A stretch of DNA of 64,000 nucleotides from Hydrolagus colliei (lineage: Eukaryota), in assembly GCA_035084275.1 (NCBI GenBank), contig CM068769.1, forward strand, positions 1,054,001-1,118,000, written 5' to 3'. Below the pieces are notes generated by a model. The model did no database searches and had not been told where the DNA came from. It saw only the letters and a program-made list of their open reading frames with translations. Made by a program: the position numbers and the translations under genes. Positions 10,131 to 51,985 of the stretch are shown here, one piece after another. The stretch's first letter is position 1. Each line of letters begins with the position of its first letter.

Positions 10131-10199
10131 GCGAGTCTGAGTCTCTGCATAGAGAGAGAGGAACTTGATACTTGATCGCTGCAAAGTTTCAGGGAGACG

Positions 10200-14620: not shown

Positions 14621-14639
14621 GACGCCCTGTGTTGATGTA

Positions 14640-14820
14640 GTTCGGTTACACGTGTCACGTGATGCTGGCAGCTCCCTCCCACTCATTCATGTCACACCTT
14701 CGCGCAAAAACTCTCCAGTCACCCGCCCTCTCGTGACGTCAGCACGTCTCCTCCATTCCCCGCTGAGAGGGACAGCCGCGTTTCCCTGGTAACCAGCTAT
14801 TGACAGGAGAGGCGGGGAAT
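14640..14820 (+). promoter_or_regulatory. Likely promoter of the TRIM gene
   Basis: Two CACGTG E-boxes near 14649-14662, palindromic CRE TGACGTCA 14734-14741, X-box-like GTTTCCCTGGTAAC 14780-14793, GGCGGGG 14811-14817; locally CpG rich. Confidence 0.55.
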
Positions 14821-16289: not shown

Positions 16290-16440
16290 TGGTGTATGAG
16301 ATCTTGAGAGATTATTTGCCCTGGTTAGAGAAAATAAAATCAGGCGTCAGAGTTTTAAAGTTAGGGGTCAGCTTTTTCGCACAGAGATGAGAAAAAACAT
16401 CTTCACTCAGAGAGTAGTGAATGTATGGAATTCTCTTGGG
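16290..16440 (+). mobile_element. CR1 3' fragment
   Basis: ...ttcactcagagagtagtgaatgtatggaattctct, homologous to the CR1 ORF2 end at 32600-32650. Confidence 0.7.
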
Positions 16441-17453: not shown

Positions 17454-18976
17454 ACGGCTTCTAGACTCCAGGATCAGTGTCTGACCGAAGATTAAAAATA
17501 TCCAATTTTTCTGTATTTCTTCACTGATCCTGTGATCCTGGAATGTGGCCACAACTATTGTCGCTCCTGTATCACCGGGAGCAGGAATAAACAGGAGACA
17601 AACTCCTGTGCTGTTTGTTAGGAGGTTTTTCTGGAGAGGTATCTGAGGGTTAATTGAGCCTTGGTGAGTCTATCTGGGAAAGCTCAGAAACTGAGCCTGT
17701 CCGTGATAGAAATGGAAACTAAACCGAACTGTGAGAAACACCGCGAGGAACTGAAGCTATTCTGTGAAACTGACAAGAAATTGCTGTGTACGATTTGCAG
17801 TCATGGGCGAGAACACAGAGATCACGGCTTCCTGCCAATTGAAGAAGCTGCTGAAATCTACAAGGTACTATTCACCTTCACCTGGGATTCACTCTAATTC
17901 ACTTCACATTTCCACCTTCAATCAGTTTATATTCTATGTGCTTATTCCAGGATAAAGTGAGATCCTCCTTAGTTTCTTTCACACAGAAGCAGGAAAGTGC
18001 TATACAAGCTGAATTCAAACAGAGAGAAAAGATTCCACAAGTTCAGGTAAGTTGTGCCGGCAGTGATTTCTGTGCACGTAGTGTCTCTCCTTGCTGTGTG
18101 TAGACAGAGTGATATCTCTCTTTACAGTGTCTACACAGTTTGATGGCTGATGTTTTGCAGGAACAGTTGAGCAGTTTGCAGACCCACCTGAAATTTGAAT
18201 TTGCTCAAATGCACCAGAGCCTGACTGACAGAGAGCTGCTAGTGATGCTAGACGTCTAGAGGCGAGAGATGGAGATTTTACACAAAATGGAGATAAGCCT
18301 GCGAGACATTCAGGACAATTTAGATTCAGTTAAACAAGAAATCTCAGAGTTATATAAACAGCTGAAAAAAGACACACTGACGTTTCTTCAGGTAAAGACG
18401 ATAAATTACAGTTGAGTTCAGTAGAAATTCTACACATTATGGAGCAGGTAATCATAGCCTGAATATTCAGCACCCTGGGACTTCCTCCAGAAGGGAAACG
18501 CGCTCTATAAATATCATTATGCAATTGTTGTTGTTGTTGGTACACAGATTAATGATTTACTAGTTGGTATGTACTTAGATGCATTTCTAACCACGTATAT
18601 CCACTTGGTTGTTGATGAATATCCGAACTTTTTGTCCTTTGGAGGCAATATTGAATGAGTTACGTCGTTATTGTACACTCAGTAAACTCCATTGTATAGA
18701 ATAGTATTTAGTGTTTCGGTGTTTACAATGTAGCAGCTAAGAGTGACTCAAACTTTCTGTGTTTGATTTAATTAGGAACAAACTGAACGGAAGAGAAGGT
18801 ATGAAATGTTTATTTCAATATATATCCCAGAATTTAATACAGAAATCAAACACAATGAGTAGATTCACTTTATATTGTGAACATTTCTTATTACAGGTTC
18901 CGTGACATGGACATCAAGATGTCTGTGTGTGAGAATGATCTGCCTGTGAGAGAGATCATAGACAGCATCAGCCCAG
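17454..18976 (+). pseudogene. TRIM (RING-Bbox2-coiled coil) pseudogene, TRIM39/21/27-like
   Basis: Exons 17454-17864 (411 bp coding), 17951-18046 (96), 18161-18391 (231), 18776-18798 (23), 18897-18976 (80), all GT-AG and matching the classic TRIM 96/231/23 pattern. Start is ACG, three stops and two lost Cys in the RING, TAG in the 231 bp exon; B-box CEKHREELKLFCETD...C..C...H..H intact. Confidence 0.93.
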
Positions 18977-18989
18977 GTAAATGTCTCCA

Positions 18990-20560
18990 AATTATCAACA
19001 TGAACAGCACAGCCCCAGCATAGCCAGCACACACAGACCATAGCATAGACCAGTACACACATTGCCGCCAAAACATACAGACGTCACTATACGCATATCC
19101 CCCACATAGCCTAGCTCACACACATCCCCTAGCATGGCGCAGCACACACATCTACTAGCATAGACCAGCACATACACTGCCGACAATTCACATAGACCCC
19201 ACTACACGCATAAACCCCAACATAGCCCAGCACACACAGCTCCCAGCATACACAGTGACCTCAGCACATACAGGTCCCCCAGTACACATACTGAAACCAA
19301 TACACACACATACTCCACCACCTTGGTAGACCCCAACATAGGCCAGCAAGCATAAAGCCCCCAGGGTAGCCCGGCACACACAGATACCAGAATAGCCCCG
19401 CGCACACACAGCTCCTCGCACAAACCCTAGTATAAACATAGACGCTAGCACAGAAATAACCCCAGCAAGGGGGCAGCACACACAGACCTGAACACATATT
19501 GCCTCCAGCATAGACGAGCACACACACAGTGCCCAGCCAGGCACACACTGACAGCCACAAGCATACGCACAGCAAGAAGCATACGCACAGCCGCCAGATC
19601 ATTCGCATCCCCCATCACACGCAGCCCCTTGTACAAGCACAGACCCTTGCACAGCCGAGCACACATAAAGTACCGAACATACACACAAGCGTCTACCTCG
19701 GCACAACAAGAACCACAAAGTTACATTTCCGGAGTGACTTTCACGACGAGATGATACAGCACATAGACAGCAGGGGGTGGAGGACTGTGGGGGGTGGTCA
19801 GGGCCATTGGGAAGGTGAGAAGTGTTGGCGGGTTGATGTATGTGAGGGGGCGTAAGTGCTGATAGGAGGGGCTGTTGGGCTTTTGGGCTGCGGGTGGGAG
19901 GGCTGAAGTTTAGGAGGGCAGTGGTGATGGTTGTGGGCCTATGAGTGGACTGCTGCGGGGGCTGTTGACGGCTGTGAGGGTCGGATGTGGTGTGGAATGT
20001 GGGTTTAATGGGCGTTGGTGAGGGGGATATAGGTGGGTGGCTGAGGGTCGTTGGTATCACGGATATGGGGGTGGGGGTGAGGATTGTCTGGGGTTTGAAG
20101 GCTCTATGTGTGTGTGAGAACAATGGTGATGGGGGGAGAAGCTTGGGGATGGGGGGGCTTTGGAAAGGACTGTAGGGAGCAGTGATGGGAGGGGGGGGAA
20201 GATGGCTGTTTGAGTGAGGGCTGTTGTGGAGGGCTTTTTGTCCGGTAGCGCTTTGGGTGGTGGGAAATGTTATGGGTATTGACGTGCGTGCATGATTCTG
20301 TAAGGGAGTCTAAGACTGTGAAGTGGGATTTTGGTAGGTACGTGTGGTCTGTGGGTTGAGGGTTGTGAGAGTGTAGGGCTGTAGGTGGCGATGGGCGTTG
20401 TAGGCTGAGTGGGTGTATTAAGGGCTGTGTGAACTTACGCTGTTGTCGGGACTGTTAGGTTTGTGGGGGCTGTGGGGTGATGAGTGCTAAGGATGGGGGG
20501 GGTGGTGTGTGAAGGCTGTGGCGCGTTCAGATTTGCGGGAGGGTGGGTGAAGGGGTGGTC
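18990..20560. repeat. CA-rich minisatellite-like tract (18990-19730) followed by G/T-rich tract (19780-20560)
   Basis: Degenerate cccagcatag...cagcacacaca units, then G-run rich sequence. Confidence 0.8.
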
Positions 20561-27700: not shown

Positions 27701-29699
27701 GGTAGTCTGGTTTTGACATCGCTTCTGGACAATGTCCAAGTGATCAACTGGCTGAGTTCGTTATGGTGGAGTGCGTAAGTTTATTGGAGTTGAATGCTGT
27801 ATGCAAATTCATGATTTAATTAGAACTAATATTGTGCTAAATGAACTAAACGAACTCTCAGTATCTTGGTATTCAAAGAAGGTCTAGCAAACAATAAAAA
27901 GAGAGTTAGCAGAACGAAAAGTAAGGAAGGACAGGAAATATTGGGAAGAGGAAAATGAAATGCAAGGGATAAATGAAATAATTATTAAAAATGAATAATT
28001 GTTGTTATCATATGGGATATGATAAAAGGAGGGAATGTGAAATTGTAAAATTTAGCCATTGATGCCTAGATGTAACTTCTATACTATTAACCCAATTAAA
28101 CATAAAAAACAAGTCCTGAGAAACGCAGACTTGGCAAACTGCCAGTCGCATCCTTATCTGAGTATTTCACGGGGCAGAAAACAGTAACTCCAGCAAACCT
28201 TGACATTGTATAAACTAGACACCATCTGGAGATAAGCTTGTTTTTAACATTTAACCTTGCTGGAGAGACATGGAGTGATTGATGTCACTATTCAATAGTT
28301 GTTGGAACCATGTGATTGATAATACTTGTGTAACTGTCTTTGTGTGTACTGCAAATCCCTGCCTTTTTCTCATGTATAAAAAGGCTGCATTTACGGACAA
28401 CGACAGCTCATTATTTTGACGGTCAGGTACTCTACTTGGAAACTGTTGACTTCTGAGAATCAGCTCTTGCTAAAGCAAATAAACTTTAAATTTTCTTATC
28501 CATGGTGTATGGTCTGTTTGTAAGACAACGGTTCTGGGAACGAACAAAAAATTACAACTTCACATCTTTCTTGCTGTCTTTCTTGCTGTTTTTCTTTCTT
28601 GCTGTATTACATTCTTGCTTATGCCTCACCCAACGGACCACATCACTCTATCCATTGATTGCCAACTCGCCAAATCTTCCACATCCCTTCCAACTCCAGA
28701 TGATTCAGAAACCCAGATGGGTTGCTCGGCTATATATATCCAGCACAATGGGTTGTCAATAATTACTTTAATAACTAATAAATAAACCACGATTGTTTGT
28801 GGGATGTTAGTTCAATTGTCTCCTGCTTCTGGCTAAAATATATGCAATGAATTAACGTTGCAATTTGTGCTACCAATTATTTCGGCGCCATCTCGAAAAC
28901 CGTGTATGTTGCTATATCAAATGCTATTATTATTAATGGCTCGGACTAACGTATCGTGATGTTGTTTGTGACTTTTCCATTTTTTGTTTTCCTTATTATA
29001 TTTCTCCTGTGCCACTGTGTTTTCGTTTATTTATGTCCCAATGTTATCTTCTTACTCTATCCTACCAATTGATCTGCCTATCTCCATTTGTATTTATTAA
29101 TATTTTCTATACTATTCTATGCATATTGTTGGAAATAATGCAACGAAATAAAATTTTACATCTCTCATGCCAGGGAAATGGCTCAAAATGCGTTGCAAGG
29201 TAAAACTCATGAGGATGAAGGATCAAGATCTACACTTGTACAGCGCGTTTCACGTCAGGAGTACGCCCAGAAGTTTGGGCAGACATTATTTCAGACCCGA
29301 GCTGTGGTCAGAGATGGGGTTGTTAGAGTGAGTGAGGGAAAGTGGGATTTCGGGTGACCAAAGGATCTGTAAAAACCGAGGGATATTAGGTTGGTCTTCC
29401 AAGAGGGCAGGGAGGTTGGCATGGCGGAGGGACAGCGGTAGTGAGTTCCAGAGTGGAAGATTGGATAGTGGAAGACTGTTTCCCATTGTTGGAGAAACTA
29501 TAACCAGGGATCACAGAATTAAAATTAGGGAGTCAACCCTCTCGCATTGCGTTGACAAACTTCACTCGGAGCGTACTGAATGTATGGAATTCTCTCTCCC
29601 AAAGGGCTGTGATTGCTCAGTTCTTGAACAAATTCAAGACTGATGATGACAGATTTCTGGTTTATAAATAGAATAAGGGATACGATGATAAGAGGTGTA

Positions 29700-32600
29700 C
29701 GTGGAGGTAGATTAAACATCAGGTTCCTAGACCATTGGGACCAATTCTGGGGTCGGTGGAACCTGTACCAAATGGATGGGTTACACCTGAACAGGGCTGG
29801 AACCTCCTTGCAGGGAGGTTGTCCAGTTTTGTGGGGGGGACTTTAAACTAATCCCGGGGGGTGAGGGTGGGAAACTGATCAGTAGTTCAAATACGGGTGG
29901 GGTAATAAAGAGGACAGGGGTAAAGGTAAGACGGGAGAAAAATGCAGAGGAAGTAATTTGTGCCTTAGATTGCATGTATGTAAATGCACGAAGTTTGAGA
30001 AATAAAATTGGTGAACTGCAGGCTCAGGTTGCTGCGAGGCGATATGATGTTATAGCAGTAACAGAGACTTGGCTCCAGCATGGGCAGGAATGGGAGTTGA
30101 ACATTCCTGGTTATAATGTATTCAGGAGGGATAGAGAGGGGAGAAAAGGGGGCGGGGTGGCACTTTTAGTTAAGGACTCAGTGACTGCCTTAGAAAGGAA
30201 AAAGTTGGAAGAAGGACTAAAAACCGAATCTATCTGGTTAGAATTGAGGAATTAAAAAGGTGCAGTTACACTGTTAGGGGTATACTATAGACCACCAAAT
30301 AGTGGGGAGGAGATAGACAAGCAGATCTGCAAGCGTATCACGGAGAAATGCAGAACTAATAGAGTAGTGATAATGGGTGACTTCAACTATCCCAACATAG
30401 ACTGGCAGAATAGTAGAGTAAAGGGCAAGGAGGGAGAAGAATTCCTGAAGTGTGTGCAGGACAACTTTCTTGATCAGTATGTTTCCAGTCCAACGAGGAA
30501 AGAAGCATTGCTGGATCTAGTTTTGGGAAATGAGGTAGGGCAAGTTCAACAGGTTTCTGTAGGTGAGCATCTAGGGAATAGTGACCACAATATCGTTAGA
30601 TTCAGAATAATTATGGAAAGGGATAAGGAACGATCACAGGTGAGTACACTCAACTGGAAAAGGGCTAATTTCAATGAGTTGAGGTGGGACCTAGCCAAGG
30701 TGGATTGGAAAGAAAAAATGGCAGGTAAGACAACTAACGAGCAGTGAGCAGCGTCCAAAGAGGAGATAGTTCAGGCACAGGTCAAAAGCATCCCCACAAA
30801 GGTGAAATGTAAGACATCCAAACCTCCATGGATGACTAAGGAAATCGGGGCCAAAATTAAACAAAAAAAAAGGCTTATGATAAGTGTCAGGCTCAAAATT
30901 CAGAAGGGAACAAAGCAGAATATAGGAAGTGTAGGATAGAACTAAAAAAGGAAGTTAGAGGGGCAAAGAGACTGCATGAAAAACAATTAGCGAGTAAGAT
31001 TAAGGGGAACCCTAAGGTTTTTTACCAACATATTAAGAGTAAAAGGTTGGTCAAGGAGAGGGTGCGGCCAATTAGGGACCTAGGAGGAAATCTCATTGTG
31101 GAGGCAGAGGGCATGGCTGATGTACTGAATGAGTACTTCGCCTCTGTCTTCACAAAAGAAAAGGATACAGCCAATGCCATGGTATTAGAGGAGAGGGTAG
31201 GAGAAATGGATAGAATAATTATAACCAGAGAGGAAGTGCTAAAAAGGTTGACGTCGCTCATGGTGTATAAGTCACCTGGTCCGGATGGGATGCACCCTAG
31301 GTTACTAAGTGAGGCACGGGAGCAAATAGCAGGGACTCTGGCCACGATCTTTCAATCTACCTTGGAGACAGGGGTCGTGCCAGAGGACTGGAGGATAGCT
31401 AATGTTACTCACTTGTATAAAAAGGGGCAGAAGGACAAGCCTGGTAACTACAGACTAGTCAGTCTAACGTCGGTAGTGGGCAAACTTCTAGAGTCCTTAA
31501 TCAGGGACAAGGTAGATCTTCACTTAGAAAGATATAGGCTAATAAAGGACAGTCAACATGGATTTGTTAAAGGCAAATCTTGCCTTACAAATCTGGTAGA
31601 ATTTTTTGATGAGGTATCGGAATGGGTGGATAATGGTAGCGCAGTTGATGTAGTTTACATGGACTTTCAAAAGGCATTTGACACAGTGCCACATGAGAGA
31701 CTTATTATGAAAATAAAGGCCCATGGCGTAAAAGGGACAGTGGCAGCGTGGATCCACAACTGGCTGCGAGATAGAAAGCAGAGAGTTGTAGTGAGCGGCT
31801 GTTTTTCAGATTGGAGGGAAGTGAGCAGTGGTGTGCCACAGGGATCGGTTTTGGGACCATTGCTGTTTGTAATCTACATCAATGATCTGGACTTGGGTGT
31901 ATGGAGTACAGTTTCCAAGTTTGCAGATGACACTAAGTTAGGGAGAATAGTAAACAGTGAGGAGGATAGTAGCCATCTGCAAGAGGATATAGACAAATTG
32001 GTAAAGTGGGCAGATACATGGCAGATGAAGTTTAATGCAGAGAAGTGTGAGGTGATGCATTTTGGGAGAAGAAATGAAAGGAGGCAATATAGGCTAGATA
32101 GTACAATTTTAAATGGTGTAAAGGAACAGAGAGACCTGGGGATTTGTGTTAGGGACTCGTTGAAGGTGGCAGGAGAGGTAGACAAGGCTGTTAAGAAGGC
32201 ATATGGGATACTAGGCTTTATAAATAGGGGTATAGAGTACAAAAGTCAGGAAGTGCTGACTAACCTCTATAGGACTATGGTGAGGCCTCAGCTGGAATAC
32301 TGTGTTCAATTCTGGTCACCACACTACAGAAAGGATGTGACGGCATTGGAAAGGGTACAAAGAAGATTTACTAGGATGGTGCCAGGATTGAGGGACTTCA
32401 GCTATGAGGAGAGGCTAGATAGGCTAGGGTTATTCTCTCTGGAGCAGAGAAGATTGAGGGGAGACCTAATAGAGGTTTATAAGATCATGAGGGGTTTCGA
32501 CAGGGCAAATAGAGAAAAACTATTTCCACTCGTGGGTGAATCTGTGACTCGTGGTCACAGATTTAAAATAGTTTCAAGGCGCAGTAGAGGGGAGCTGAGG

Positions 32601-32855
32601 AGAAATGTTTTCACTGAGCGAGTTGTTCGAATCTGGAATGCATTGCCTGAAAAGGTGGTGGAGGCTGATTCGATAACAACTTTTAAAATGGAATTAGATC
32701 TTTATTTAGGGAGAACGGGTCTATTAGGCTATGGGGAGCGGGCAGGGCAGTGGGATTGAATCGCTCTTTTCAAAGAGCCGGCACAGACTAGATGGGCCGA
32801 ATGGCCTCCTTTTGTGCCGTAAAATTCTATGATTCTATGATTCTATGATTCTATA
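29700..32855 (+). mobile_element. CR1 LINE, 5'-truncated in ORF1, nearly complete ORF2
   Basis: ORF1 esterase tail DGLHLN; APE motifs (YVNARS, VTETW, GDFN); RT ORF 31047-32759 with FADD; stops at 30253 and 30745 plus a frameshift near 30870; (ATTCTATG)n tail 32823-32855. Confidence 0.95.
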
Positions 32856-33149
32856 TGTATATTGAAGTTGTAGCTGTTGTCTCCAAGGCACCAGTCACAA
32901 TGCATTTTTGCTACAATGCACGTTTGAACAAGCAACAGATCAACACATCTAAATTTTGTTTGTTTGTGTATCAAGTTGATAAATTGTCACTATCAGGGCC
33001 CTGGATTATTGCACACCAGTCTAGTTCAACCACCAAATTTCAAAGTTCTTTTGAAATTATTCTTACTTACTTTGTGTTACTGTTATTCTGGTTGCAGGCA
33101 TATATTTGGTTTTTTCTGAGCTTCGCACATAGCAGGGATGTTGATAGTA

Positions 33150-33422
33150 TCGTGCTCTGCAGTAGTAGTTAGAGCTGACTTCAACTTCCAAGTTATTGAT
33201 TTCTAATGAAAAATAAGTCGATCCTTTTTCCTGATTTTATAACACATCGATCAACAACAGGGATGGACACCCGCTGTGTCTCTTTGCCAAAATGTCGAAC
33301 AAATTACATGCTCTTGAAAATAACATCCGTTCTTGCTTCAAATACACAGTTGATGAACAACGACTCGCATTCGTTACGTGTCAGAGAGGTTGGTGTCTGC
33401 TTTACTGAGACGCTGACAGCTT
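33150..33422 (-). pseudogene. VNAR-like V exon, probable NAR-TCR (NTCR) V pseudogene
   Basis: Acceptor tttgttcag at 33423; EAVSVSVKQTPTSLTRNECESLFINCVFEARTDVIFKSM*FVRHFGKETQRVSIPVVDRCVIKSGK/GSTYFSLEINNLEVEVSSNYYCRAR with one stop (33304-33306) and one extra A (33225-33229); 61 residues between the Cys; GTAAGT donor at 33515-33520; possible decayed 23-RSS at about 33108-33149. Confidence 0.75.
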
Positions 33423-33964
33423 CTGAACAAACATACAATAACATGTTGATATTTTTGATATTATCCACTCCTATTCTAAATAAATCCCAAGATTGGGCTT
33501 TATCTAGTCTGTTGACTTACAATGTATGTGTTACAATTAGTGCTTTGGGACGCCATCTAGGTATGAAGGTAGCGGTGAAAAAGCAAAGTAGACTTGTTTA
33601 CTTCAGGATAGAATTTACATGCTAAAATGTACATTTGAAATCGACAATTCACCACTGGTTCACTGTCCATTTTATGTATTTTCATTGTGTTTGTGTTATG
33701 TAACAAAGGATATCATTTTTATTTTTCTGGAAAAAGCAAAAAAGCAAAGCTTTAAGGAAAGGGACTGATTGGCAGCTCTCTCAAATGGTCTGAATATCCT
33801 TTTTCAGGCTCAAGCTGAAACATGCCACAGTCCATCGCCATGAATCAAAGCTTCCTAAGCAAACTTTAGAGTTACGCCACTCCGAAAACGTTAAATCTCA
33901 AGGGAAGCACGCCGATTTGCTCGTGATTGAAAATATATTTGTCAAACTTTCAGTGTTGTGAAGT

Positions 33965-34040: not shown

Positions 34041-37000
34041 TGAATTCGAAACACCGAATACCCTCACAACTCTCTCCCCTTCACCCCGAAATATCTCCCT
34101 GCCCTCCCAACTCTCTTATTTCTCTCCCAATTGTCCACAACCACATACGGATGTCCCCTCGAAGTGAAATACGCTCTATGAATGTAATTTTGTTATTGTG
34201 TTTGCTTTATCATAATATTAGCAGCATTGCATGATAATGATAATAACACTAATGCTTTCATTTATCGTATCGCCAAATCACATCTTTGGTTCCAATCACA
34301 GCACCTCACAGAATATATCATAATTGTATTTCACTACACTTTGTCTGGAAATGTGGCACCCAGCAGTGTAATGGTGTTCCACAAACAGTCGTAGATTTTG
34401 CTATTTAAGCTTTTGTATCGATTACACGGCTTGCGTTCGATATAGAACTTTTCACATCTTCTAGACGTTTCAAAGCGCTTCACATAGTATACTGTAAAGT
34501 GACTTGACGGTATATTTGTCGGCGAATCGCAGCAGTCATTTGCACACAGCAGCGTCCCCACAAAGAGTGGATTGAAATGACCGATTTCATTATTGTGGTT
34601 TTTAACTAGATACTAAATCTTCCCGAATAGCAACCGGGTGATGGACTACCAACCAGCGGTCACTTAATGCTTTTTAACACGCGTAATTTGGAAGATGCAA
34701 ATTTGCCCAAAGTTTATTACTGATAGTTATGAAACCAGAGGTTTTCTCCGTAATATTTCTCCTACAAATAGGTCAATTCTCTATACCGCATATTCTGTCA
34801 AGCGCTCTGAGACGTCGGCAAGATGCGAAAAGCGATATATCAAAAATGCAAGGATGATTATTATTATTATTCTATTACCATAACCTAGCCTCGCGTTCCA
34901 TTCTATACAGATTCTGCCTGCCCTGGTGAGTGTTCCCAGTGATCTAAGTATTCGTTCCCGTTTACATTATGTTTCACTGACAAAGCAATAAAGTTAACAC
35001 AGTGCGTCGTTGAAGTTTGTACAACTAACATCCATTGGGACCAATGGCTCGAAATTATTTTGGCAAAAGCAAAGCAATTGAGAAAATGATGCATCTCGAA
35101 AAAGCTACACAGTATACTGTGTGATATCGAAAAGTGTTGGACACGATATAACAACAAGAACAAAAAACAATACATTGATAGAGCGCCTTTCACGTCGGGA
35201 GGACATCCCAAGGCGCTGAACAAGAGGCGTGTGACCCGAGCTGGGACGGGAGTGTTTGGGAAGGAGTGAAAGACGAAGGGGAGGTAAAAGAGTTCGGGGA
35301 GGAACAAAAGGCACGATCGAAGAGGAAATTCTTCAAACCGGCCTTGAAAAAGGAAAGGGAAGAGGCGAAACGGAGGGATTGAGGGATGGCAATCCATAAG
35401 GTGGGAGCGGAGAAAGTGAAGGCCCGGCCTCCGATGGTGGGGCGGTTCGGGCGGGGGGTTTGGCGCAGGCCAAGTCCTGTTGAACGGTGGGTCCGGGTGG
35501 GCGTGTGGGTGGAGAGTAGATCGGTTAGGTAGGATGGGGCAAGGCCGTGTAAGGCCTTGTAGGTGAGGACGAGGATCTTAAACTCGATCCTCTGGAGGAT
35601 GGGGAACAAGTGGGGACGGGCGAGTGTGGGGGTTATGTTTTCGCGGTGGCGGGTGCGGGATAGTACACGGGATGCAGAGTTTGGGATGGCCTCCAGCCTA
35701 TGAATGGAGGAACTAGGGAGGCCGACTAAGATACAATTTCCCTAGTCCAGCCGTGAGGTGATGTAAGCATGCACAAGTGTTTCGGCAGCGCGGGGGGGAA
35801 GATAGTTGCGGAGCCTGGCAATGTTGCGCAGATGGAAATAGTCGGTGCCGGTCAAAGCGCGAATGGGGGGGAGAAGGAAACTTTTTCATCGAACATAATG
35901 CCGAGGTTCCTGATTGGCTTTGTGAGTTGGAGAGTGCAGCCTTGGATGTTGAGGCTCGCAGCGTCCGATGTGCGGAGGCGCTGGCTTGAGCCAATCAGGA
36001 GGACCTCGGTCTTATTCACGTTCAAGTGCAAAAAGTTGTCCATCGTCCACGATTCGATGTCGGACAGACATGCTGTCAGAACATCGATCGTCTGGGCGTT
36101 GAGGGATGAGGCAGAAAGGTAAAACTGTGTGTCATCCGCATACATGTGGAAATTTACCCCATGTCTGCGGATGACGTCGCCCAGATGGAGCGTGTAACAA
36201 CAACAACAACAATTTATATTTATAGAGCGCCTTTCACGTCGGGAGGACGTCCCAAGGCGCTAAAAATGGTGAAAAGGAGGGGACCGAGGACAGAGCCCTG
36301 AGGGACGCCGTGGGAAACTGTGCGGGGTTTTGAAGTAAAGCCATTGGAAGAAACAAAATGTAAACGGTGGGTCAAATAAGAATGGAACCAGTCAAGGACT
36401 GTGCCTTGAAGGTTGAGGTGGGAGGAAAGACGTTGAAGGAGGATGGTGTGATCGACTGTGTCGAACTCAGCAGACAGGTCAAGGAGGACGAGGATGCAGA
36501 GGGAGCCCTGGTCACATGCGGTTTGGATGTCATTTGTGACCTTAACCAGGGCAGTTTCTGTACAGTGGATAGGGCGGAAACCTGATTGGATGGGTTCAAT
36601 AAGTGAGTGACTTGAAAGGAAAGAGCGGAGTTGGGAGGTAACCAGTCTTTCAAGGACCTTGGATAGAAACGGGAGTTTGGAGGTGGGTCGATAACTTGAT
36701 GGTTGCGACGCAACAAGGGAGTGTTTCTTCAGGATAGGGGTGATGGTGGCTGTTTTAAGAGAGGTAGGGACGGTTCCTGAGGAGAGTGACAGGTTAATGG
36801 TGTCAGAAATGAGCGGGGCTAACAAATGGAGCTGGGTGCGGAGGAGGGGTGTGGGGAAGGGGTCCAATGAGCACGTGGTGGGTTTCATGGAGGTGATTGT
36901 TTTCGTGACTGAAAGCGGGGTGGTGGGGTTGAAAGTGTGAAATGGGGGGGGTGAGTATGTGTTGAGGTAGCTGATGAGGGCGCGGAGTGGTGGGGTAAGG

Positions 37001-40609: not shown

Positions 40610-42211
40610 ATGGCATTTCATGCAGCCACTTCTTCTGGGATAACTTATACTTTTCGCTCCAGCTCCTTACAGGATGGAACCCCAGTCTGTATGAAGAAAC
40701 TGGTTCCTCCTAAATCTGCCCAAGCCTGTGAACTAATTGCCCTTGCGGAGGCTTGTAAACACGCTGTGGGAAAACCGGTTACCATATATACTGACTTTCG
40801 CTACGCCTTTGGCGTGGTTCATGATTTTGGGAGGTTGTGGGAAAACCGTGGATTTTTAACTTCATCAGGTCATCCCATTTCTAACGGTACTGAAGTTGTC
40901 AACCTCCTACAATCTGCTCTGCAACCTGCTCAGTTAGCGGTTGTGAAATGTTCTGCCCACACGTTGGCCCAGGATCCGGTCTCACTTGGAAATGGACATG
41001 CGGATAGATGTGCCAAACTAGTGGCTGAGGCCCCACTTGGTACCTATCCAGTTAAAACTGTGGTTCCCATTATTCCCAAACAACGTACTAACATGCCCTC
41101 TGTTTATGATATTGTGTTACTCCAGGAGGACGCTCCGGTGGCAACTCGTCAGTCATGGGTTGAAGAAGGCTGTGCCCTATCCGAGGAAGGGGTCTGGATG
41201 ACCCCTGTCGGTCAGACCTGCATGACTGATGAGCTGGCAGGATGGGTAGTCGCCTGCGGTCACCAACAGACTCATTCGGGGGGTAAACAGCTCTCTGAGT
41301 GGCTCCTTCAGACCTGGTGACACCCATGCATGATGCAGCTGTCTGAGAAAGCTGTCCTCCGGTGCCTATTGTGCTCTGAGCATAATCCTGGGAAAGGGTT
41401 CCCAGTGGTCACCGGTGATACCCCTGTACCTCAACTTCCATTTGAGGTGCTTCAGATGGATTTTATTCACTTACCTAAATGTCAGAATTTCAACTATGTA
41501 TTGGTTATCATCGATGTATTTTCCCGTTGGGTTGAAGCATTTCCAACGGTAAACAATACTGCTGAGACGGTTGTGCGATTGTTGTTACGGGTAATAATTC
41601 CTCGTTTTGGGGTGCCTGGTCGTTTGGTTTCCGACAACGCCCCTCACTTTATTGCCTCTGTTAACCGCTCTCTCTGTTCCCATTTAGACAGTAAACAGTC
41701 GTTTCATTGTGTTTATCATCCCAAAGCGGCGGGCATAGTGGAACGAGTCAATCAGACGATTAAGACAAAACTGGCTAAACTTACAAGGGGGCATGGCTCT
41801 TCATGGGTCCGCTTTTTGCCTCTTGTATTGTTTCAGATTCGCTCGGCACCCACTGTAACTACCCGGTTATCTCCAGCAGAAATTATTTATGGGCGCTCTT
41901 TAATAGGCCCTTGGTCGGCTTCGGCTTCCTCTTCGCTTACTCATATGTCTGCTGACATGGTGGAGTATTTCAAAACTCTTTCTACCATTCTCCGTATTAA
42001 TCAAACAACAGTTTCCAGTCCCTCTAACAATATTAGTTTACCTGATCCTCCTTTACACCCCGGTGATTATGTTATGATTCGCAATTGGGTCAGGAAATGC
42101 CTGGACCCCCGGTGGATAGGTCCTTTCCAAGTTCTCCTCTCAACTCCAACTGCGGTTAAATTAGAGGGGAGAGATCATTGGGTTCACATACATGAGTGTA
42201 AACAATCATGA
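40610..42211 (+). pseudogene. pol: pol remnant: partial RNase H plus integrase, one internal stop
   Basis: SAQACELIAL, TIYTDFRY, KCSAHT, GNGHAD; HQQTH...CLLC zinc motif split by TGA 41318-41320; QMDFI / SDNAP / VERVN catalytic D-D-E; WIGPF C-terminal motif. Confidence 0.93.
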
Positions 42212-42328
42212 AGTGTAAACAACATGATGCTACTGCCTTCACCATTGTCCCGTCCTAGGGTACAATTTTGTTCCTACAGGCTCGAAGACGTCGTGGAAAG
42301 AAGCTCGAAGAAGTTGTGGACGTCGGCG

Positions 42329-43711
42329 ATGAAGAACTACCTGTCACTCTGGTGGAAGACGTTCGATGCCTTCGTGAGACGAAGTGGGCCGACACGATCA
42401 GAAAAACAGAGACTGCTTGGGCAGGGCCTACGATATCCACATTTCAGCCTTGCAAAATGGACAGGGATTCTGATGATATTGGGGATGATGCTGGACACAG
42501 AAGTAGAATGCTCCATAGTAGCAAATACTTTTCTCCTCACTGCGTACAAAACAACGGTGACGCTGGGAGTATCAAGCTGTTGGGTGTGTGCGGCTCTCCC
42601 ACACAGTGCGGGAGGGGGTTTTCCCATGTTGATAGTCCCTTTCAGCAAAATGCAGACAATACGGGCTCTGCAACAATCGGGTTTTAATATGACTGGTGTG
42701 CTAACTAATGAGACAGTTTCCTGTTCTCCCCTCAATAATACTATGTACCGTCAAGATTATAACTGCACACAAAAACCACCATGTATCAAGGTAGAGAAAA
42801 CAGATGGAAGTGTTTGTATAATACGAACAGGCCCAGGGACAAAAGTGGGAGAGAGTTAGTGTTCATATTCTCTGTAATTAGGAAATGCCACCAGTCGGCA
42901 GGATTCGGCGACCATCTCACTCAATGATACTTCTTGTAAGGTGACGGGCAGCCAATAGGAGGCAATCATCCACATTACTCCCCCAGACCACCCAGTACCC
43001 TCATTTAATGGGACATACTGGGTGTGCGGGACTTGGGCATACCCATGGCTGCCAACCAACTGGAGTGGTTCCTGTTACCTTGGACATGTTGTCCCACACC
43101 TGCATATTACAAAACTTTCGGAACACCCGCATACAAAAAACCATATCACACGTAGAGCAGTAGCAAGGTACGAACAGATTTTTGGGGTATTTGTGCCCCC
43201 ATACGGTCTGCTCCGTACTAATCAAGCATTGGGGGCTTTACAAACGGTTTTGGAGGCTGTTGCGAATGAAACCGCGGATGCCTTACAAGACATATCCGCT
43301 GAAATGGTGGCTATTCGCACTGTAACCCTCCAAAACCGGATAGCTCTGGATATATTGCTTGCTGAAAAGGGAGGCTCTTGTGCCTTGATTGGCTCTGAAT
43401 GTTGCTCCTATATTCCGGATGCTTCTGAGAATATTAATAATATTGTACAACACATCCAACAACAAGTCAGAGAATTGCATCAGACTGACGTAAGCCCTGG
43501 TATATGGGGTTGGTTGACCGATTGGTCGATTAGCGGTTGGATGACTAAAATTTTGCCATTTATTATCATAATTGTTATAATCCTGGTAGTTGTATTATGT
43601 TGTTGTATACCCTTATTTTAAAAACTTATACTATCTATGATGACAGGCTGGGATGCCCCGGCAGCAATGTTGTACATGGCTCCTGACGATGATTTCTCAG
43701 CATTCGAGTAG
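42329..43711 (+). pseudogene. env: Gamma-type env with in-frame stops
   Basis: Acceptor ttcctacag 42271-42279; CWVC, furin site ITRR, ISD LQNRIALDILLAEKGG, CX6CC, TM anchor; stops at 42857, 42875, 42956 and 43619 in one frame, tail remnant to 43711. Confidence 0.93.
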
Positions 43712-45071: not shown

Positions 45072-46031
45072 CGAGTGATCCCACAATAGTATGTGGCTGA
45101 ATCAGATAGAGCCGCAGCCAGCACAGTTACAGTGGATGACTTGCTGCTCGTGTCCAAACTAATGGTGAAAAGACCTTCAGCAAATTGAGCTCTGAAAGTG
45201 TACCCATCATAATCGGGTATCAGTGTGTACAGAGGAGGCTGGCCTGGATATTAACGGTACAAGTACTTCAAAACATTGGTGAAACCAGCAAAGAAGGTCC
45301 ATCTTGGAGTCAGAGTCCGGCCTTGACTGACAGAGTAGGTTACTTACATACAAGGACACTTCCCTCTGCGATGGTTCAACAACACCTCCATTCGCTGTCA
45401 CTGTAGCCAGGAAGAAAATGTTACAACACAAACTTTGTTTTTTACATTGATCGAACCCCCCTTCACGTCGGTAGGACGTCCCAAGGCGCTGAACCGATAA
45501 GCCCGGACCCGAGCGGCAGGGGGTTTGTGGTGTTTCAGTGCAGGGGGAATGAAAGTAAGCGAGCGGGGAGAGTAAGGTGGGGGAGCACAAGGCACATTCG
45601 AAGAGGAAGTTCTTCAGACCAGCCTTGAAGTAGGAATGGGAGGAAGTGAGGCGAAGGGATTGCGGGTTGAAGTTCTACCGTTTGTGGGCAGAGAGCCTGA
45701 AAGCTCGTCCACCGATGGTAGGGCGATTAGGGTGGGGAACGTGGAGCCGGCCAGAGCCCGCTGAATGGAGGGGACGAGTATGTTCGCAGGGAGGCAGCAG
45801 TTCGGAGTGAAAGGCAGGGGCAAGTTTGTGAATTGCCTTGAAAGTGAGGACGAAGACCTTGAATTTGACCCTCTTGGTGATGGGGTGCCTGTGGAGACGG
45901 GCAAGGGTGAGAGTGATGTGATTGCAAACACCAGCGATACATCCAGAATTTGTTTCAATAGCGAGAGTAGGTTACTTACATACAAGGACCAATAACATTG
46001 AAATGAGCAAAGCAATGTGTTTACTCTCCAT
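45072..46031 (-). pseudogene. TCR alpha/delta-type V pseudogene (a)
   Basis: Leader 45980-46031 MESKHIALLISMLLVLV, V exon 45072-45400 ending LSDSATYYCGIT; 22 nt insertion, first Cys to Trp, Trp to Leu, a stop; L2 fragment in the intron. Confidence 0.88.
45430..45930 (-). mobile_element. L2 3' fragment in the V(a) leader intron
   Basis: GSNSRSSSSLSR-type frame and agcgccttgggacg tail; the paralogous V(f) intron is only ~90 bp. Confidence 0.8.
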
Positions 46032-47844
46032 GTTTCCAAGCGATGAATCAGTTGATTCGATGGGAGAAGTTGAGATGATTGATTGTGTCGGATATGTGCC
46101 TGGAAGCAGAATGGGGAGCAAATGGGGAGCAAAGTTGAATACAGCAGCGACAGATACGCCTCTGTAACAATAGTTTCAAACGCCACCACCGGATTTGTGA
46201 ACTCTGTTTGATTAGGTGACGAATCAACCACTTGGGTCGCACAACTGCCGATCTAAATAGCTTATTGTTGTTGTAACGCAATGCTGGCAGTTTAGTACAT
46301 TGTGAAATGCTATAGCTTTGTAGTTAGAATGATCAGATCACAAGCGAGACCCAAAGTAGTGCACTTTAGTTACTTTTTTTGGTGGAACATTTTGCTAATA
46401 ATAGCAAAAATAATAATCAGTTTTTATATTAAAATTATACAATCCTAACCCTAATATGATTATTAGTTTAATAATAATCCAAATTTTATTATTGTTTTTT
46501 TTAAAAAGGATTGTGATTTAGCGTGTGTGGAGTAAGGAAATTTACTCAAACTTTCGCTCTGATCTGCCTGGATTCGAACACATGTCTCACACTTGTAAGG
46601 CATGTGCCCTAACCACCGAGATACAGCAGCTCTATTGTTTCAGAATGGAACTTGATAGGTTATGTTAGACGCAGCTCATGTGGTGTGTGTCTTTAGTGCG
46701 CCATGTGCTGGTGGATTATATCTACAATGTCTTTACAATTGTAGACATTTGAAAGCAAACTTGTTTGAACCGTCCTAACATTTCACTGCGATGTGCACTA
46801 CTTTTTAAAACACAATTGATAGACAGGTGAGTGTGACAGCATTCCCCAGAAACCATAATCGGTGAGGTTTTTTATGTGATAGAGTAAGTATCATAAGTAA
46901 TAATAATCGTTGGGTTTGAGAATTTGGCATATCACAATTTTAAGTCACTTTGAAGAGATTTAGAACAGGAAAATATAATTGAATTAACTTCATATTGTGT
47001 GGGTAAAAAACGGTAGAACAAGTAAGTAATCAGTGTCCTCATTCTCTGATTGACCAATTTATTATTATTTTGAGTCAATCACTTATTATTACTTCATGGT
47101 GTCTTATAGCTCATTCCATAGAGCACACGCATTTGATGCAAGAAATATGACTTCACTTCTAGACAAGGGGAAAGGTTTGTGAAATTCCCTTACTCTACAC
47201 AACTAATAATAATAATCCCTCGAACATAACAACATTAAATTGGTCGTTTCAATCCACGAGAGTATGTGCCAGATTTGCTTTGTTCAAATGGCTGCCGCGT
47301 TTCACCCACAAAACATATCATCAATTCACTTTACTTTATATGCTTTGTAAAGCAGTTTGATGCGCTTAAAAGACGTGAAGAAAGCTATATCGATGCAAGG
47401 ATTATTACGAGTAGAGTCGTAGTATAGTGAAGCATTTAGGCGGAAGGAATGAGGAAGGGAATTCCAGAATCAGTCTTCGATTCAGTGAACATTTCTTGTG
47501 GGGAAATCGTTATTTGGAAAGAGATGCACCAGTCGATCATCAACCCTGATCCTATTTACTGCTAGTTATATATCTGTGTGTGTAGTAAGAAAACTTGCCT
47601 AAAGTTTTGCCAATTGCAGCCCAGGAATCAAACGCTTGTCTCTCTTTTGTGAGACGAGCGATCTAACACACAGAGGTACTTGTTTCCGCAGTTCATCTCA
47701 TGAGCAAATGAACAAAGGCTTGTCTTGTCTTGAGTGAGGGTCTCTGCTGCTGGTGACTTTTATTTTTGCTTCATACTACAGTGTTAACCTACAGGGTCAT
47801 CGCAAGAATGCAAAGCACATACTGTAACTGACGAAGGGCAAGGC

Positions 47845-47882
47845 AGTTTTTGTACGAGGCTGCCGTGCAGTCTATCACTGTG
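47845..47882 (-). other. RSS of V(b), 22 nt spacer
   Basis: CACAGTG atagactgcacggcagcctcgt ACAAAAACT. Confidence 0.85.
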
Positions 47883-49183
47883 GTGCGAGTGTAGCACAGT
47901 AGTACACCGCGCTGTCAGACATCTGCAGCTCGGAAACGGTTAACATGGTGGATGTATTGGATTTGTGAATATCAGCAGAGAATCGACTGCCAAACCCAGT
48001 GCCTTTGACTGGATTATCATTGCCAGTAGAGTATCTCCGAACTATAAACTCTGGCTGGCTGTGCGAGTAATGTCTGTACCAGTAAAGATAGTAATTGGCT
48101 CCAGTATTTGGATATGTAAAATCTACATTTGCAGTTTCTCCTTCTTTCCGAACCAACGCGGCAGCTTTGTAGCTGAAAGTGTCGCCAGCCCAGAGTTCTG
48201 TAATAGAAAAAGAAGAGTGGGTCCATACGTTATCCACTATTTGCCTCAATTAGCTTTTTCTGAGCTTGAGAAATTATCTCGACTTTACTGGTATTATGAA
48301 TAAGTCATTTGTTAAAAATACAATGATAATAGTTATTAAATTATAGAGAGAACGTGCTTAATTCGTTGTTGTTGTCAGAATTTACTGCACAGAACCTGCT
48401 ATCAAGCTGATTACAAAGTGTTATTGTGGGCGATACAACACGACCAAATATGCCCAGCAGTGTTTCACACACAACCGTGATGGAGTAGCAATATACATAA
48501 GATCAATAATCCTTGCATTTGATACTGCGCTTTTCACGTCATCTAGACCTCTGAAAGCGCTTCACAGAATATACTGCAAAGTGAATTGAATGTAGATTAT
48601 TGGGCGAAACGCGGCATGAGATTGCGCACAAACAGTGTCCCCGCAAACATTCGTGATTGAAATGTTCCAATTTTTTTCTTGCCTGATTTTTTGGTGGACG
48701 GATTATTGATAGGCGTATGGAGTAGAGACACTAGCCTAATGTTTCGCTTTGACAGACTTGGATTCGAACACAAATCTCACTCTTGTAACTCAAGATCCCT
48801 AATCATTCGGCTACTTTTATTATATTTGTCCTTATATTATTATCGAAACTTTGTGTTTCAGTGTGTACTGCCCTCCACAAACTTACCTACAAATCAACTG
48901 AAAGGAGTTTCAGTGGACAATATATTATTATTTCTGTTTTTGTCCGGCAGATGAAGGAAGAGTTATCCTAATTACCGCAGGTAAACTTGCCAAATGTTAC
49001 CACCTGACCAGAAATTAATCTCAGTTTCTATCGCGTGTGATTCAAGGACAGTTACCAATTGGCTAAAGGCTTCCGGCAATTGTTGAGGTGTAGGTGGCAA
49101 TCAGTAGCAACAGTATCTCAACCCAACACGACCTCACCTGAAATAACATTTGCCAGCATTAGACATACAGTCAATAGCCCCAT
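47883..49183 (-). CDS. TCR alpha/delta V segment (b), open frame but first Cys replaced by Phe
   Basis: Leader 49138-49183 MGLLTVCLMLANVIS, V exon 47883-48197 ...ANVDFTYPNTGANYYLYWYRHY...PEFIVRRYS...KGTGFGSRFS...SDSAVYYCAT. Confidence 0.88.
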
Positions 49184-49285
49184 TGTATGTGTCAAGCATC
49201 TGTGGTTATGTCTACGGCCTCAACTGGCTGATATCCCACAATGCTTGTCGTCACTGGCAAAGCCCATATTTTCACGTCACTTGAT

Positions 49286-49293
49286 TGACGTCA
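49286..49293. promoter_or_regulatory. CRE in V(b) promoter; related TGACATCA at 52806 and 62412 upstream of V(c) and V(e)
   Basis: TGACGTCA about 100 bp upstream of the leader ATG; CRE-like motifs are established TCR V promoter elements. Confidence 0.55.
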
Positions 49294-51985
49294 CAGAAAC
49301 GTTGCAAGAAACAACAATCAATTGGATTGATACAGAGCCAATCGCTGGAGGATGCAAACCTTCCATTCTGATCCAGATAACAACACAATCAAAGCCCTAA
49401 TGTGCAGGCTGGTCATTTTATTAACACCATAACAATCTTTCCGTTTCTGATAGCGGCTTTTTCGTCGTCGATATACCACAAGTTGCAACAGAGTCAGTTA
49501 AATAGAGTGCACAGAATCATAAATTCATCCAATTATACGGCGCAAAAGGAGGCCATTCGGCCCATCTAGTCTGTGCCGTCTATTTGAACAGAGCAACTTA
49601 ATCCGACTGCACAGCTCTCTCCACATAACCTAACAAACCAGCTCTTCCTAATTAACGATCCAGTTCCCTTTGAAAAGCTGTTATGAAACCTGCCTCCACC
49701 ACCTTCGTAGCCAATCCATTCCAGATTCGAACAACCCGCTGAGAGAAAAAATCTCTCGTCAGCTCCCCTCTTCCTCAGGCCCGGGTACGTCCGACCGAAT
49801 TGAAAGGCGCTTTATGAATGTACATTTGGTTTTGTTTACTCAATATTTTGCGAGCGAATCACAATTATGCACAGCAGTGTCCGGTGAACGATCGTGGATT
49901 GACCGATGGCCAACAAACTACCAATTTATTATCAATATTTTTTGAAGGAATTAATTCATACGGAAATGCCTTTCCACCTAACGACAGGTAAACATACTTC
50001 CGTGGTGCATGGAAACTTGCCTAGTATTTCACTCCGGTGGAAATCGAACCGAGGACTTTTATTTGCGTGACAATTCCTTTTTTCCCCACTAATATTGCGT
50101 GAGTGGTTGAGCTTCGCTGTCACCATGGGATCATCGAGCTGTTTGTTTGACTGTAAGACCATACATCAATGTAATTCGCACTTTCTGTCGTTCTCTCCTT
50201 TCCAATCGGCACGCGCTGCAGCAATCTACAAAGACATTATTAGAAACCTACTGGACTCAGTGCTTTTGTGTAGCAGTTTCTGATTGTTTCCTAGCACGAA
50301 CTTCTCTCTCCTCAAATCATTACCCGTTGCCTTCAATCCTCCGGTTCTGGTCTCCATCTTGTCCCCCGACTCCTCCGCTCCACCATCGTCGGCCGAGGCT
50401 TCAGTCAATACGCCCCGAAGCTGTGGAAATCGCTGTGATTCGCCCCGCTCTCTTTCCAGTTTCTTGTCTCAGCTGAAGACCATTCTTTTCGACCGTGCAT
50501 TCGATCAGCTTTGTGCCCCCGCTTTGGCTCGGGCCCCGGATCCGTTATTGCAAAACGCTCTCAGGGCGCTTTAGATAGCCACCCCAGCGCGGAGGACGCT
50601 TTCGAAATCGAAGTTACTGTTGTTGGTACTTGTAACAGGAAGCGGCTTTTAATGCTGCCGAAGAAGCCAGTTACAGAAAGCAACGTTGGCAAATTAAGTC
50701 AGTTGTTGTGATCGTACCATTGCTGCGCCATCTTCTGGTGGACAATAGCTACAACACGTCTATAATTGGTGACATTTCTGTTAAATTTTACCATTCCTGT
50801 TGAAGAATCAACTTTGTGTTTTTTTAGTAAAATATTATTTTCGTCTTACTTAAACACATGTGAGTATAACGGGACACCCGGGAAGCACTGGGTTATTTAA
50901 ATGAAAGTAACAATATTGTATGCAATAACATTAATAATCCCGCATTTCAAATTATTCAATTACTCAAGGTTTATTTCAAGTGGACTGAAATCGCTTTCAG
51001 AAGAATGTATTAACGATAAATTGACTTCGGCACTTCAGAGTTCCATTGGTTTGAGTGAACGATTCAACGTTTTTGTAGTAATAATTTTAAACATGCATTA
51101 TTAATTTTGAAGCGTGTATTGTCCAAGTAAACTGATATGCCATGCGACTACCAAGTGAGTTGCTTGGTTTTAGACCAGAAGCGTGTGTGTTAACGAAATA
51201 ATGTTTTGCTCTTCCATGACTGAACCAAGGTGCTCTCACTTGCAAGGCAATCACTAACCACTGAGACAAAGGCCTCAGTATTTGGGTCTCTGTATGGCAA
51301 AAACGGTGATCTGCTGCCAAATATGCAACAGTATTGAGAATATGCTGCATCATTGTGCACTATACGTGATATCATGTCAAGTGTAAATGAATGTATTTTT
51401 CAGGCAATTTCACAGCGAATTCACTTGGTAGTACATTGAGTCGTCCAGCAGCCGTGATAAGGTTCTGTGTCAACTAAAAGAATTATTATTATTATTAATT
51501 CCACTCTTTCTCGACTTGAACCACTCTATCAATTCTTCAGCTTGTGTTTGTAGATCAGTCACGTATTTCCACTGAGACACAGCGGCAGAGTTAACAGATT
51601 GTCAAACAGGTCAAAATTCAGTCCAGGCCTCTGTCCTGAGATTAAACCATTTCTCTGCTATTAGCATGTTAATGTAAAATGGGGCAGGCTGACAGCAGTC
51701 TGATTGTAACATGGCTTGTGTGATAGCTTGGTAACACGTGGATGTGTTAGACAAAGTGAGGGACAATCTCATCAGATTGTAACGTATAATGACGTGAGAG
51801 TTTAGCTTACAAGCTGATTGGAGGGGGATGTGGTTTCCTCTGAGTCTGGCTGCTGAAGTGGCTGCTCCACGCAGGGCATCAAGGCCTGACCAAGTTTCCG
51901 CTCAAATTTCAAACAGACGGATTGTCCCTATGTATTAAATCAAGGCAGTATTTGTACGAGCCCTGCAGTGTAGTCAACCACAGTG

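Follow-up and report, generated by a model that had tools for sequence, protein, structure and literature searches.

The NAR-TCR is the standard case of a doubly rearranging antigen receptor among T-cell receptors (TCRs) and has been proposed as the source of the variable (V) domain of the shark single-domain antibody; its double rearrangement is said to have been described by Criscitiello in 2006. The V domain of IgNAR (VNAR) rearranges with three diversity (D) segments, and germline joining of antigen-receptor segments is known, and common, in the immunoglobulin (Ig) clusters of cartilaginous fish. The published hallmarks of the NAR-TCR V domain (NAR-TcRV) are a leader, a cysteine in the a-b loop, the absence of the tryptophan of the WYRK motif, and an associated leaderless delta V with a cysteine in its complementarity-determining region 1 (CDR1) (PMC1845163), and the presence of NAR-TCR in holocephalans is already on record (PMC1845163; PMC3964593). 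Two further precedents come from cartilaginous fish, namely a germline-joined IgM V listed for Hydrolagus and UrIg2, a non-rearranging gene of fused V and joining (J) parts with linkage to the genes for TCR alpha/delta (PMC12227049), and a third from marsupials, in which the joined V of TCR-mu is thought to have been retro-copied (PMC3457774). Here we analyze 64,000 nucleotides of the holocephalan Hydrolagus colliei (GenBank assembly GCA_035084275.1, contig CM068769.1, positions 1,054,001 to 1,118,000 of the forward strand; hereafter the window), in which a first-pass annotation made from the sequence alone had pointed to a hidden VNAR-like V segment as a probable NAR-TCR V relic. We find that the exon in question very likely represents a dead NAR-TCR V(D)J exon, already joined in the germ line, at the 3' edge of a mostly dead TCR V cluster.

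The exon is 352 nt long, or 351 nt without one extra base (2 nt, 116 codons and 1 nt), and once that base is removed it is a phase-1/phase-1 exon, the usual layout for the domain exons of the Ig superfamily. Its features, in window coordinates and with a slash for the splice boundary, are:

33071..33422, minus strand: NAR-type V, CDR3 and J-like framework region 4 (FR4) in one exon that includes the end of the leader, delimited by reading frames, splice sites and best matches to the Callorhinchus milii (elephant shark) proteins P0169 and P0161
33423..33443, minus strand: phase-1 3' splice acceptor, a polypyrimidine tract with AG at 33424-33423 (...CATGTTATTGTATGTTTGTTCAG/AAGCTGTC)
33367..33369, minus strand: Cys codon TGC of the a-b loop (RNECESL), one of the NAR-TcRV hallmarks; NAR-TCR Vs have KECES/KECQS in the alignment here, and IgNAR has ETGES
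33346..33348, minus strand: canonical Cys1 (INCV), from the exon reading
33304..33306, minus strand: in-frame TAA stop, at a position occupied by Glu in the C. milii relatives (KSM-E-FFRQ)
33301..33303, minus strand: Phe codon where WYRK has its canonical Trp, likewise one of the NAR-TcRV hallmarks, FVRH aligning to FFRQ/FYRK of NAR-TCR Vs and WYRK of IgNAR
33223..33231, minus strand: A-run GGAAAAAGG, the +1 frameshift site, between ...VIKSGK and GSTYFSLEIN...
33159..33161, minus strand: canonical Cys2 (NYYCRAR), 61 residues after Cys1
33114..33158, minus strand: germline-fixed CDR3-like stretch RARYYQHPCYVRSSE, with Cys at 33134-33132 and no recombination signal sequence (RSS) after the V part
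33071..33113, minus strand: J-derived FR4 KTKYMPATRITVTQ, its G-x-G bulge eroded to M-P-A
33065..33070, minus strand: phase-1 5' splice donor GTAAGT in the position of a J-segment donor (ACA GTA ACA CAA A/GTAAGT)

Frame 1 of the exon reads EAVSVSVKQTPTSLTRNECESLFINCVFEARTDVIFKSM up to the TAA, its single stop, and then FVRHFGKETQRVSIPVVDRCVIKSGK, and frame 2 takes over with GSTYFSLEINNLEVEVSSNYYCRARYYQHPCYVRSSEKTKYMPATRITVTQ and is open up to the donor; both flanks of the frameshift align in register to P0161 (...NAVKGSASCSLEIN). The reading frame runs 30 codons beyond Cys2, through a J-like TRITVTQ, to the phase-1 GTAAGT, and its last part, KTKYMPATRITVTQ, aligns with the FR4 of VNARs and nanobodies. 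Read through the donor, the window exon continues as QSK followed by a stop, and the C. milii gene models likewise read through as ...KSK. The first-pass annotation had seen here a spliceable exon in need of only two repairs, a stop and an extra A, and the acceptor, the GTAAGT donor, the single TAA and the one-base shift are all confirmed; it had placed the end of the element at 33108, whereas the exon, with its CDR3, FR4 and splice donor, goes on for another 37 nt to 33071.

Sequence comparison supports the assignment of this exon to the VNAR-type Vs of the NAR-TCR kind. The distance between the canonical cysteines is 61 residues in the window exon and in the C. milii NAR-type Vs, 60 in IgNAR V and 62 in one elasmobranch NAR-TCR V, as against 71-73 in the neighbouring TCR Vs, and the exon lacks residues in a block of 12-14 columns (the C'-C'' region with CDR2) that the TCR Vs possess. 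Together with this short C'-C'' region it displays two other features of NAR-TcRV, namely the cysteine in the a-b loop and phenylalanine for the tryptophan, and it resembles the NAR-TCR Vs described from elephant shark and nurse shark (Venkatesh 2007; PMC1845163) further in lying among TCR Vs and in having a J-type phase-1 donor. It differs from them in that the described ones rearrange, whereas the window exon is joined and dead: neither a split leader, nor a V-RSS with separate D and J, nor a supporting delta V within a few kb past the J donor was found in the window. The deletion of CDR2 and the parallels to the VNAR framework (QTP...ESL.INCV and FSL.IN.L.VE) for which the first-pass annotation had argued are therefore borne out by direct comparison. 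Its suggestion that phenylalanine in place of tryptophan marks a divergent family does not stand, since the missing tryptophan and the a-b-loop cysteine are both published hallmarks of NAR-TcRV (PMC1845163); what it had written as a mismatch within RNE.ESL is that very cysteine.

Rather than building a composite protein across the stop, we searched and placed the three uninterrupted pieces of the exon (A, B and C) separately. The top 17 matches of piece A (39 residues) in the PDB are all VNARs, with a best E-value of 0.015 and QTPTSLTRNECESLFINCV aligned to QTPTTTTKETGESLTINCV, and the alignment of piece C extends through FR4. Pfam returned no matches for the three pieces, which are too short to score. 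Alignment of the pieces with a single VNAR by MAFFT misplaced them, and adding more VNARs corrected A and C but not B. A word-indexed search with a VNAR sequence as bait gave VNARs only and no NAR-TCR. Complete NAR-TCR chains of many elasmobranchs came up when 1.84 billion representative proteins were searched with a profile of VNARs and pieces A and C, and so did a 121-residue domain of C. milii, P0161 (UniProt A0A4W3GPE3), to which a follow-up search added P0169 (A0A4W3GLF4) and P0170 (A0A4W3GJH3) of the same species. All three are annotated merely as Ig-domain proteins. Among the retrieved proteins, P0169 and P0161 are the best matches of the three co-linear pieces, with E-values of 4e-11, 7e-4 and 2e-14, well beyond what chance would give. 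The V part of the window exon is 57% identical to P0169 and 50% to P0161, and 42% to the rearranging-type NAR-TcRVs of C. milii, which occur together with a leaderless supporting V in P0037 (XP_007909367). Elasmobranch NAR-TCR Vs reach 30-41% and IgNAR Vs 29-38%, and identity to TCR V, to supporting V and to VH-like and SIRP-like domains is 12-22%. The C. milii domains themselves are V-set domains by Pfam (PF07686; 27.3 bits for P0161 and 29.7 bits for P0169 against a cut-off of 26), and the best single-domain PDB matches of P0161 are VNARs (E-value 1.7e-11); the PDB contains no NAR-TCR V, so IgNAR Vs head its matches.

A maximum-likelihood (ML) tree, which contains no UrIg2 sequence, recovered the NAR-TCR Vs and these C. 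milii copies as one clade (support 96/84) that is separate from IgNAR V and distant from conventional Vs, and within it the C. milii copies as sister to the rearranging C. milii NAR-TcRV (97/89). Placed singly, piece A takes a position within the NAR-TCR V clade (95/89) and piece B groups with the C. milii copies (98/95); piece C comes nearest to the same copies, without support. Hence, the view of the first-pass annotation that the element is a dead relic of a NAR-TCR-type V is supported by hallmarks, best matches, clade placement and lesions alike; neither the ranking of best matches nor the ML tree groups it with conventional TCR, Ig light-chain or non-rearranging V-set genes, the outcome which that annotation had named as contrary to its reading.

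What sets the exon apart is the fusion of V, D and J in germline DNA. In the neighbouring TCR Vs an RSS follows directly on the Cys2 region, whereas the window exon continues instead into CDR3 and FR4, and a heptamer/nonamer scan of the window found no RSS at the exon or at 1-33 kb. The window DNA itself therefore presents the features of a germline-joined gene: a contiguous V-(D)-J, no RSS, and flanking splice sites that are retained. In three elasmobranch loci, by comparison, the segments lie apart. In Chiloscyllium plagiosum (L001), S. canicula (L002) and P. pectinata (L003) a V with an RSS23 is followed about 0.7-0.8 kb on by a J, and a leaderless supporting V lies 1.9-3.5 kb past the J donor, the whole spanning 3-4.5 kb; a D segment with flanking RSSs could be read in L001 only. 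The J segments of these elasmobranch NAR-TCRs, of the form WKYD..DG(P/S)GTVVTVTA followed by G/GTAA, align with the FR4 of the window exon, and its donor has the same layout as the J donors of C. plagiosum (...ACA GCA G/GTAAAT) and S. canicula.

The C. milii proteins share the joined architecture. Over the stretch that starts at Cys2 and ends with the read-through tail, the window exon equals its C. milii relatives in length and aligns to them without a gap, 16 of 32 residues being identical (50%). The CDR3 of the C. milii copies, RARFDANRCAVGKRE, has the same length as that of the window exon and, like it, a cysteine and EKTK, and their FR4, KTKDGTGTAVTVTK, aligns with the window FR4. Essentially one CDR3, with an invariant junction CRARFDANRCAVGKREKTKDGTGTAVTVT, recurs in all three of the distinct C. 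milii gene models; since somatic junctions would not produce a single CDR3 common to three gene models, the joined state in this species appears to be encoded in the germ line. The C. milii copies are thus like the window exon in exon architecture, hallmarks, inter-cysteine distance, CDR3 and the read-through ending in SK, and differ from it in having open frames with an intact DGTGT motif in FR4; the window frame is broken by a stop and a frameshift, and M-P-A stands in place of G-x-G. Further, because the dead window copy is still 50% identical to the elephant-shark copies, gap-free across CDR3 and FR4, the joined exon is likely to be both old and duplicated.

The window copy is a dead pseudogene, disabled by several lesions: besides the stop, the frameshift and the change of G-x-G to M-P-A, the Asp of the D-x-G-x-Y-Y-C motif and the Phe of the GRF motif have been replaced. 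Two candidate leaders on the minus strand were rejected. An ATG-started mini-ORF at 33521..33556 (MASQSTNCNTYI followed by GTAAGT) has 36 nt or 12 codons, is polar and of phase 0, and cannot be spliced in frame to a phase-1 V exon; an in-frame ATG 21 nt upstream of the exon (MLLYVCS...) is merely the translated polypyrimidine tract. Downstream of the exon, no V-like, supporting-delta-V-like, C-type or other Ig exon was detected at 1-33 kb of the window, and the expected place of the next exon is occupied by a long interspersed nuclear element (LINE):

29300..32855, plus strand: CR1-like LINE with endonuclease and reverse transcriptase open reading frames and a (ATTCTATG)n tail, its 3' end about 215 bp past the exon donor in the minus-strand sense

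Given the stop, the frameshift, the eroded motifs, the lack of a usable leader and of a partner exon, and the CR1 LINE that follows the donor, the window copy cannot make a functional domain.

As to origin, the joined exon would have arisen by germline RAG recombination within a NAR-TCR V-D-J cassette of the rearranging kind, presumably after the holocephalan NAR-TCR Vs split from the elasmobranch ones, with the leader intron and the intron downstream of J kept through the joining. The germline-joined Ig genes of cartilaginous fish offer the closest parallel, in that V(D)J is fused in the germ line, the flanking introns are kept and an origin by germ-cell RAG activity is presumed; they differ in belonging to Ig heavy- and light-chain clusters with C exons following, whereas the window exon is a TCR-associated V of the NAR type. 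Intact copies are predicted to supply a single domain, invariant and distal to the membrane. If NAR-TCR is a guide, an intact exon would be spliced through its J donor to a leaderless supporting TCR delta V, itself rearranging to D, J and C delta. We tentatively put forward, as a quite real possibility, that holocephalans carry a conserved subfamily of germline-fused NAR-TCR V exons with a fixed CDR3 containing a conserved cysteine and EKTK, which might provide a TCR delta chain with a single-domain module of invariant, innate-like character.

Several observations weigh against the interpretation of the window exon and its C. milii relatives as products of germline joining within NAR-TCR. The joined state in C. 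milii is read from three single-ORF gene models with one shared CDR3 and not from genomic DNA, and their splicing to a supporting delta V is an analogy with NAR-TCR and not an observation. No ATG-started hydrophobic phase-1 leader mini-exon was found within 1.1 kb upstream of the window exon, though leader loss is possible in a pseudogene. The frameshift falls within a homopolymer and might stem from faulty assembly, an explanation that would not account for the stop and the other replaced residues. The support from fold comparison is partly circular: for the AlphaFold2 model of P0169 (pLDDT 87.8) the first 44 Foldseek matches are VNARs, and the alignment used for the model itself contained VNARs. 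Finally, approximately unbiased (AU) tests on 98 columns do not reject a grouping of the joined copies with IgNAR V (p 0.079), nor a position beside the conventional-V branch, that is, basal in the NAR family (p 0.23), and hence do not formally exclude other placements. As these tests are not decisive, it is the ML topology, together with CDR1 features common to the holocephalan sequences, on which the choice between secondary joining and an exon that was never split depends.

The alternative that fares best, though we regard it as improbable, is that the exon was never split, being instead a primordial VJ exon of the UrIg/UrIg2 kind, a non-rearranging relic that predates the invasion of the NAR lineage by the RAG transposon. 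A single VJ exon with splice sites is what such a history would leave behind, UrIg2 provides a precedent near TCR alpha/delta (PMC12227049), and the basal position is one of those that the AU test leaves standing. The ML tree, however, nests the joined copies with the rearranging C. milii NAR-TcRV inside the NAR-TCR V clade, and the two share a holocephalan CDR1 pattern, C.FEA.S..TF..MEF.R. Neither UrIg nor UrIg2 chains appear among the top 60 PDB sequence matches of P0161 or among the top 50 fold matches, which are VNARs, no C-type exon lies downstream in the window, and germline joining is in general common among the Ig genes of cartilaginous fish.

Less likely still is the explanation preferred by the first-pass annotation, namely that of an ordinary rearranging NAR-TCR V with an RSS, orphaned by deletion of its D, J and supporting V. 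That the exon is of the NAR-TCR type is true, and so is one part of the claimed loss, as no supporting delta V is present at 1-33 kb; D and J have not been lost, since CDR3 and a J-like FR4 follow contiguously without an RSS, and the scoring of RSSs downstream that had been suggested yields none. The sequence that superficially resembles a signal is the A-rich run AGAAAAAACC ending at 33108, which we considered as an RSS nonamer and rejected: no heptamer lies at a spacing of 12 or 23 (+/-1), the possible spacers being 19, 20 and 32 nt, and the run is coding, specifying SEKTK where C. milii has a conserved REKTK. An orphaned V would also be hard to reconcile with an open reading frame that goes on for 30 codons past Cys2 to a phase-1 GTAAGT.

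Contiguity of V, D and J could also have come about by retro-copying of a piece of somatically rearranged NAR-TCR mRNA, and LINEs are plentiful in the window; retrotransposition has been proposed for the germline-joined V of marsupials (PMC3457774). Both flanking introns are retained, however, as the polypyrimidine/AG acceptor and the GTAAGT donor testify, nothing from a supporting V or a C region is fused to the J end, and a poly(A) tail is missing, all of which make this origin very unlikely; because the acceptor before and the donor after the exon have been kept, RAG-type germline joining is favoured over a retro-copied cDNA. The marsupial system is similar in that a three-domain TCR chain has one of its two V domains pre-assembled and invariant, and different in that the joined V there is the membrane-proximal supporting one, whereas here it is the distal NAR-type V with its introns, in an unrelated lineage. 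Least likely of all is a relic of IgNAR V instead of a TCR-type NAR V, which would have in its favour the first places of IgNAR Vs in a PDB that holds no NAR-TCR V, a common fold, framework motifs and CDR2 deletion, and the AU result that falls just short of rejecting a clade with IgNAR V, but is contradicted by Cys and Phe where IgNAR has the a-b-loop Gly (ETGESL) and the WYRK Trp, by the window having none of the IgNAR C exons to which IgNAR V is attached, by the embedding of the exon among TCR Vs with RSS23, by the supported NAR-TCR V grouping, and by nearest relatives from C. milii, a species reported without IgNAR but with NAR-TCR (PMC3964593).

Germline joining of a NAR-TCR V is the reading we retain. 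The NAR-TCR family, joined Ig genes and the joined TCR-mu V are all known, and a germline-joined NAR-TCR V is seemingly undescribed: we found no description in the literature searched, the key NAR-TCR papers and their supplements lying outside that search, so that an earlier description is possible. If the reading is correct, one lineage turned the diversifying distal domain of its receptor into an invariant one, a new instance of conversion from adaptive to innate use; a germline-assembled NAR-TCR would be the natural comparison for marsupial TCR-mu, and the joined exon could serve as a marker for dating germline RAG activity in cartilaginous fish. The window pseudogene matters as evidence for the age and the multiple copies of the joined form, and because it points to three uncharacterised intact elephant-shark genes.

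The exon forms one end of a series of TCR V segments. Six of these lie upstream on the same (minus) strand, at about 45.1, 47.9, 52.0, 56.6, 60.4 and 63.2 kb (45077-63546; here V45, V48, V52, V56, V60 and V63), and heptamer-22/23-nonamer RSSs were scored for four of the six (V45, V48, V52 and V56), that of V48 being CACAGTG-22-ACAAAAACT. Stops or frameshifts interrupt all except V48 (47884-48192), an open copy in which Phe replaces Cys1; in V60, besides its lesions, Phe replaces Cys2. Overall, this part of the locus appears to be in decay. The only database relatives of V48 are C. milii V genes, at 61-64% identity. The segment nearest to the joined exon is:

45077..45334, minus strand: TCR V pseudogene V45, nearest upstream of the joined exon, with an RSS23 at 45071, belonging to the V type found ahead of the joined NAR exon in P0170

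P0170 is a chimeric gene model, with a TCR V of the V63/V45 type as its front half and a joined NAR exon as its back half, and V45 precedes the exon in the window in the same order, which hints that a V63/V45-type V and a joined NAR exon form a duplicated unit.

P0170 is also one of two automatic models among the retrieved proteins that chain unrelated V exons, the other being P0041 of Cetorhinus maximus (XP_078425937.1), in which a NAR-TCR V, a supporting V, two more V domains (one of them VH-like) and a TCR constant region are strung together; both are useful sources of sequence and not real proteins. In the elasmobranch NAR-TCR models XP_043538417 (L001, 6491-7330) and XP_038643991 (L002, 36300-37140) V is connected to J by a predicted 'intron' drawn across the unrearranged V-D-J, and the CDR3s of these proteins are annotation artefacts.

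Among the remaining features of the window, an RSS-like site at 37340 on the minus strand combines a perfect heptamer CACAGTG, a 23-nt spacer and a near-perfect nonamer ACAAAAGCC; it lies in repeat sequence beside a LINE, with no V-like open reading frame upstream, and we dismiss it as probably due to chance, about one such site per window being expected in shuffled sequence. LINEs are abundant throughout, and a second LINE family is represented by two copies in opposite orientations, at 2254-4111 (plus strand) and 35190-36888 (minus strand), with endonuclease and reverse transcriptase fragments and near-identical stretches. Between V45 and the NAR exon, at 40610-43621 on the plus strand, lies an endogenous retroviral insertion with a pol of the RNase H/integrase type and an env-like open reading frame with a transmembrane end. 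Long low-complexity stretches rich in CA/TG extend from about 10000 to 20000, with an extreme GC skew of 0.53 at 12-14 kb and spurious His/Thr/Pro-rich open reading frames on both strands. At about 4963-5279 on the minus strand, the strand of the V genes, and 28 kb downstream of the NAR exon, there is an intact-looking SRCR domain exon (Pfam SRCR, E-value 7.7e-25) with an acceptor ttttacag/ and a donor /gtacat; it is the only SRCR exon in the window.

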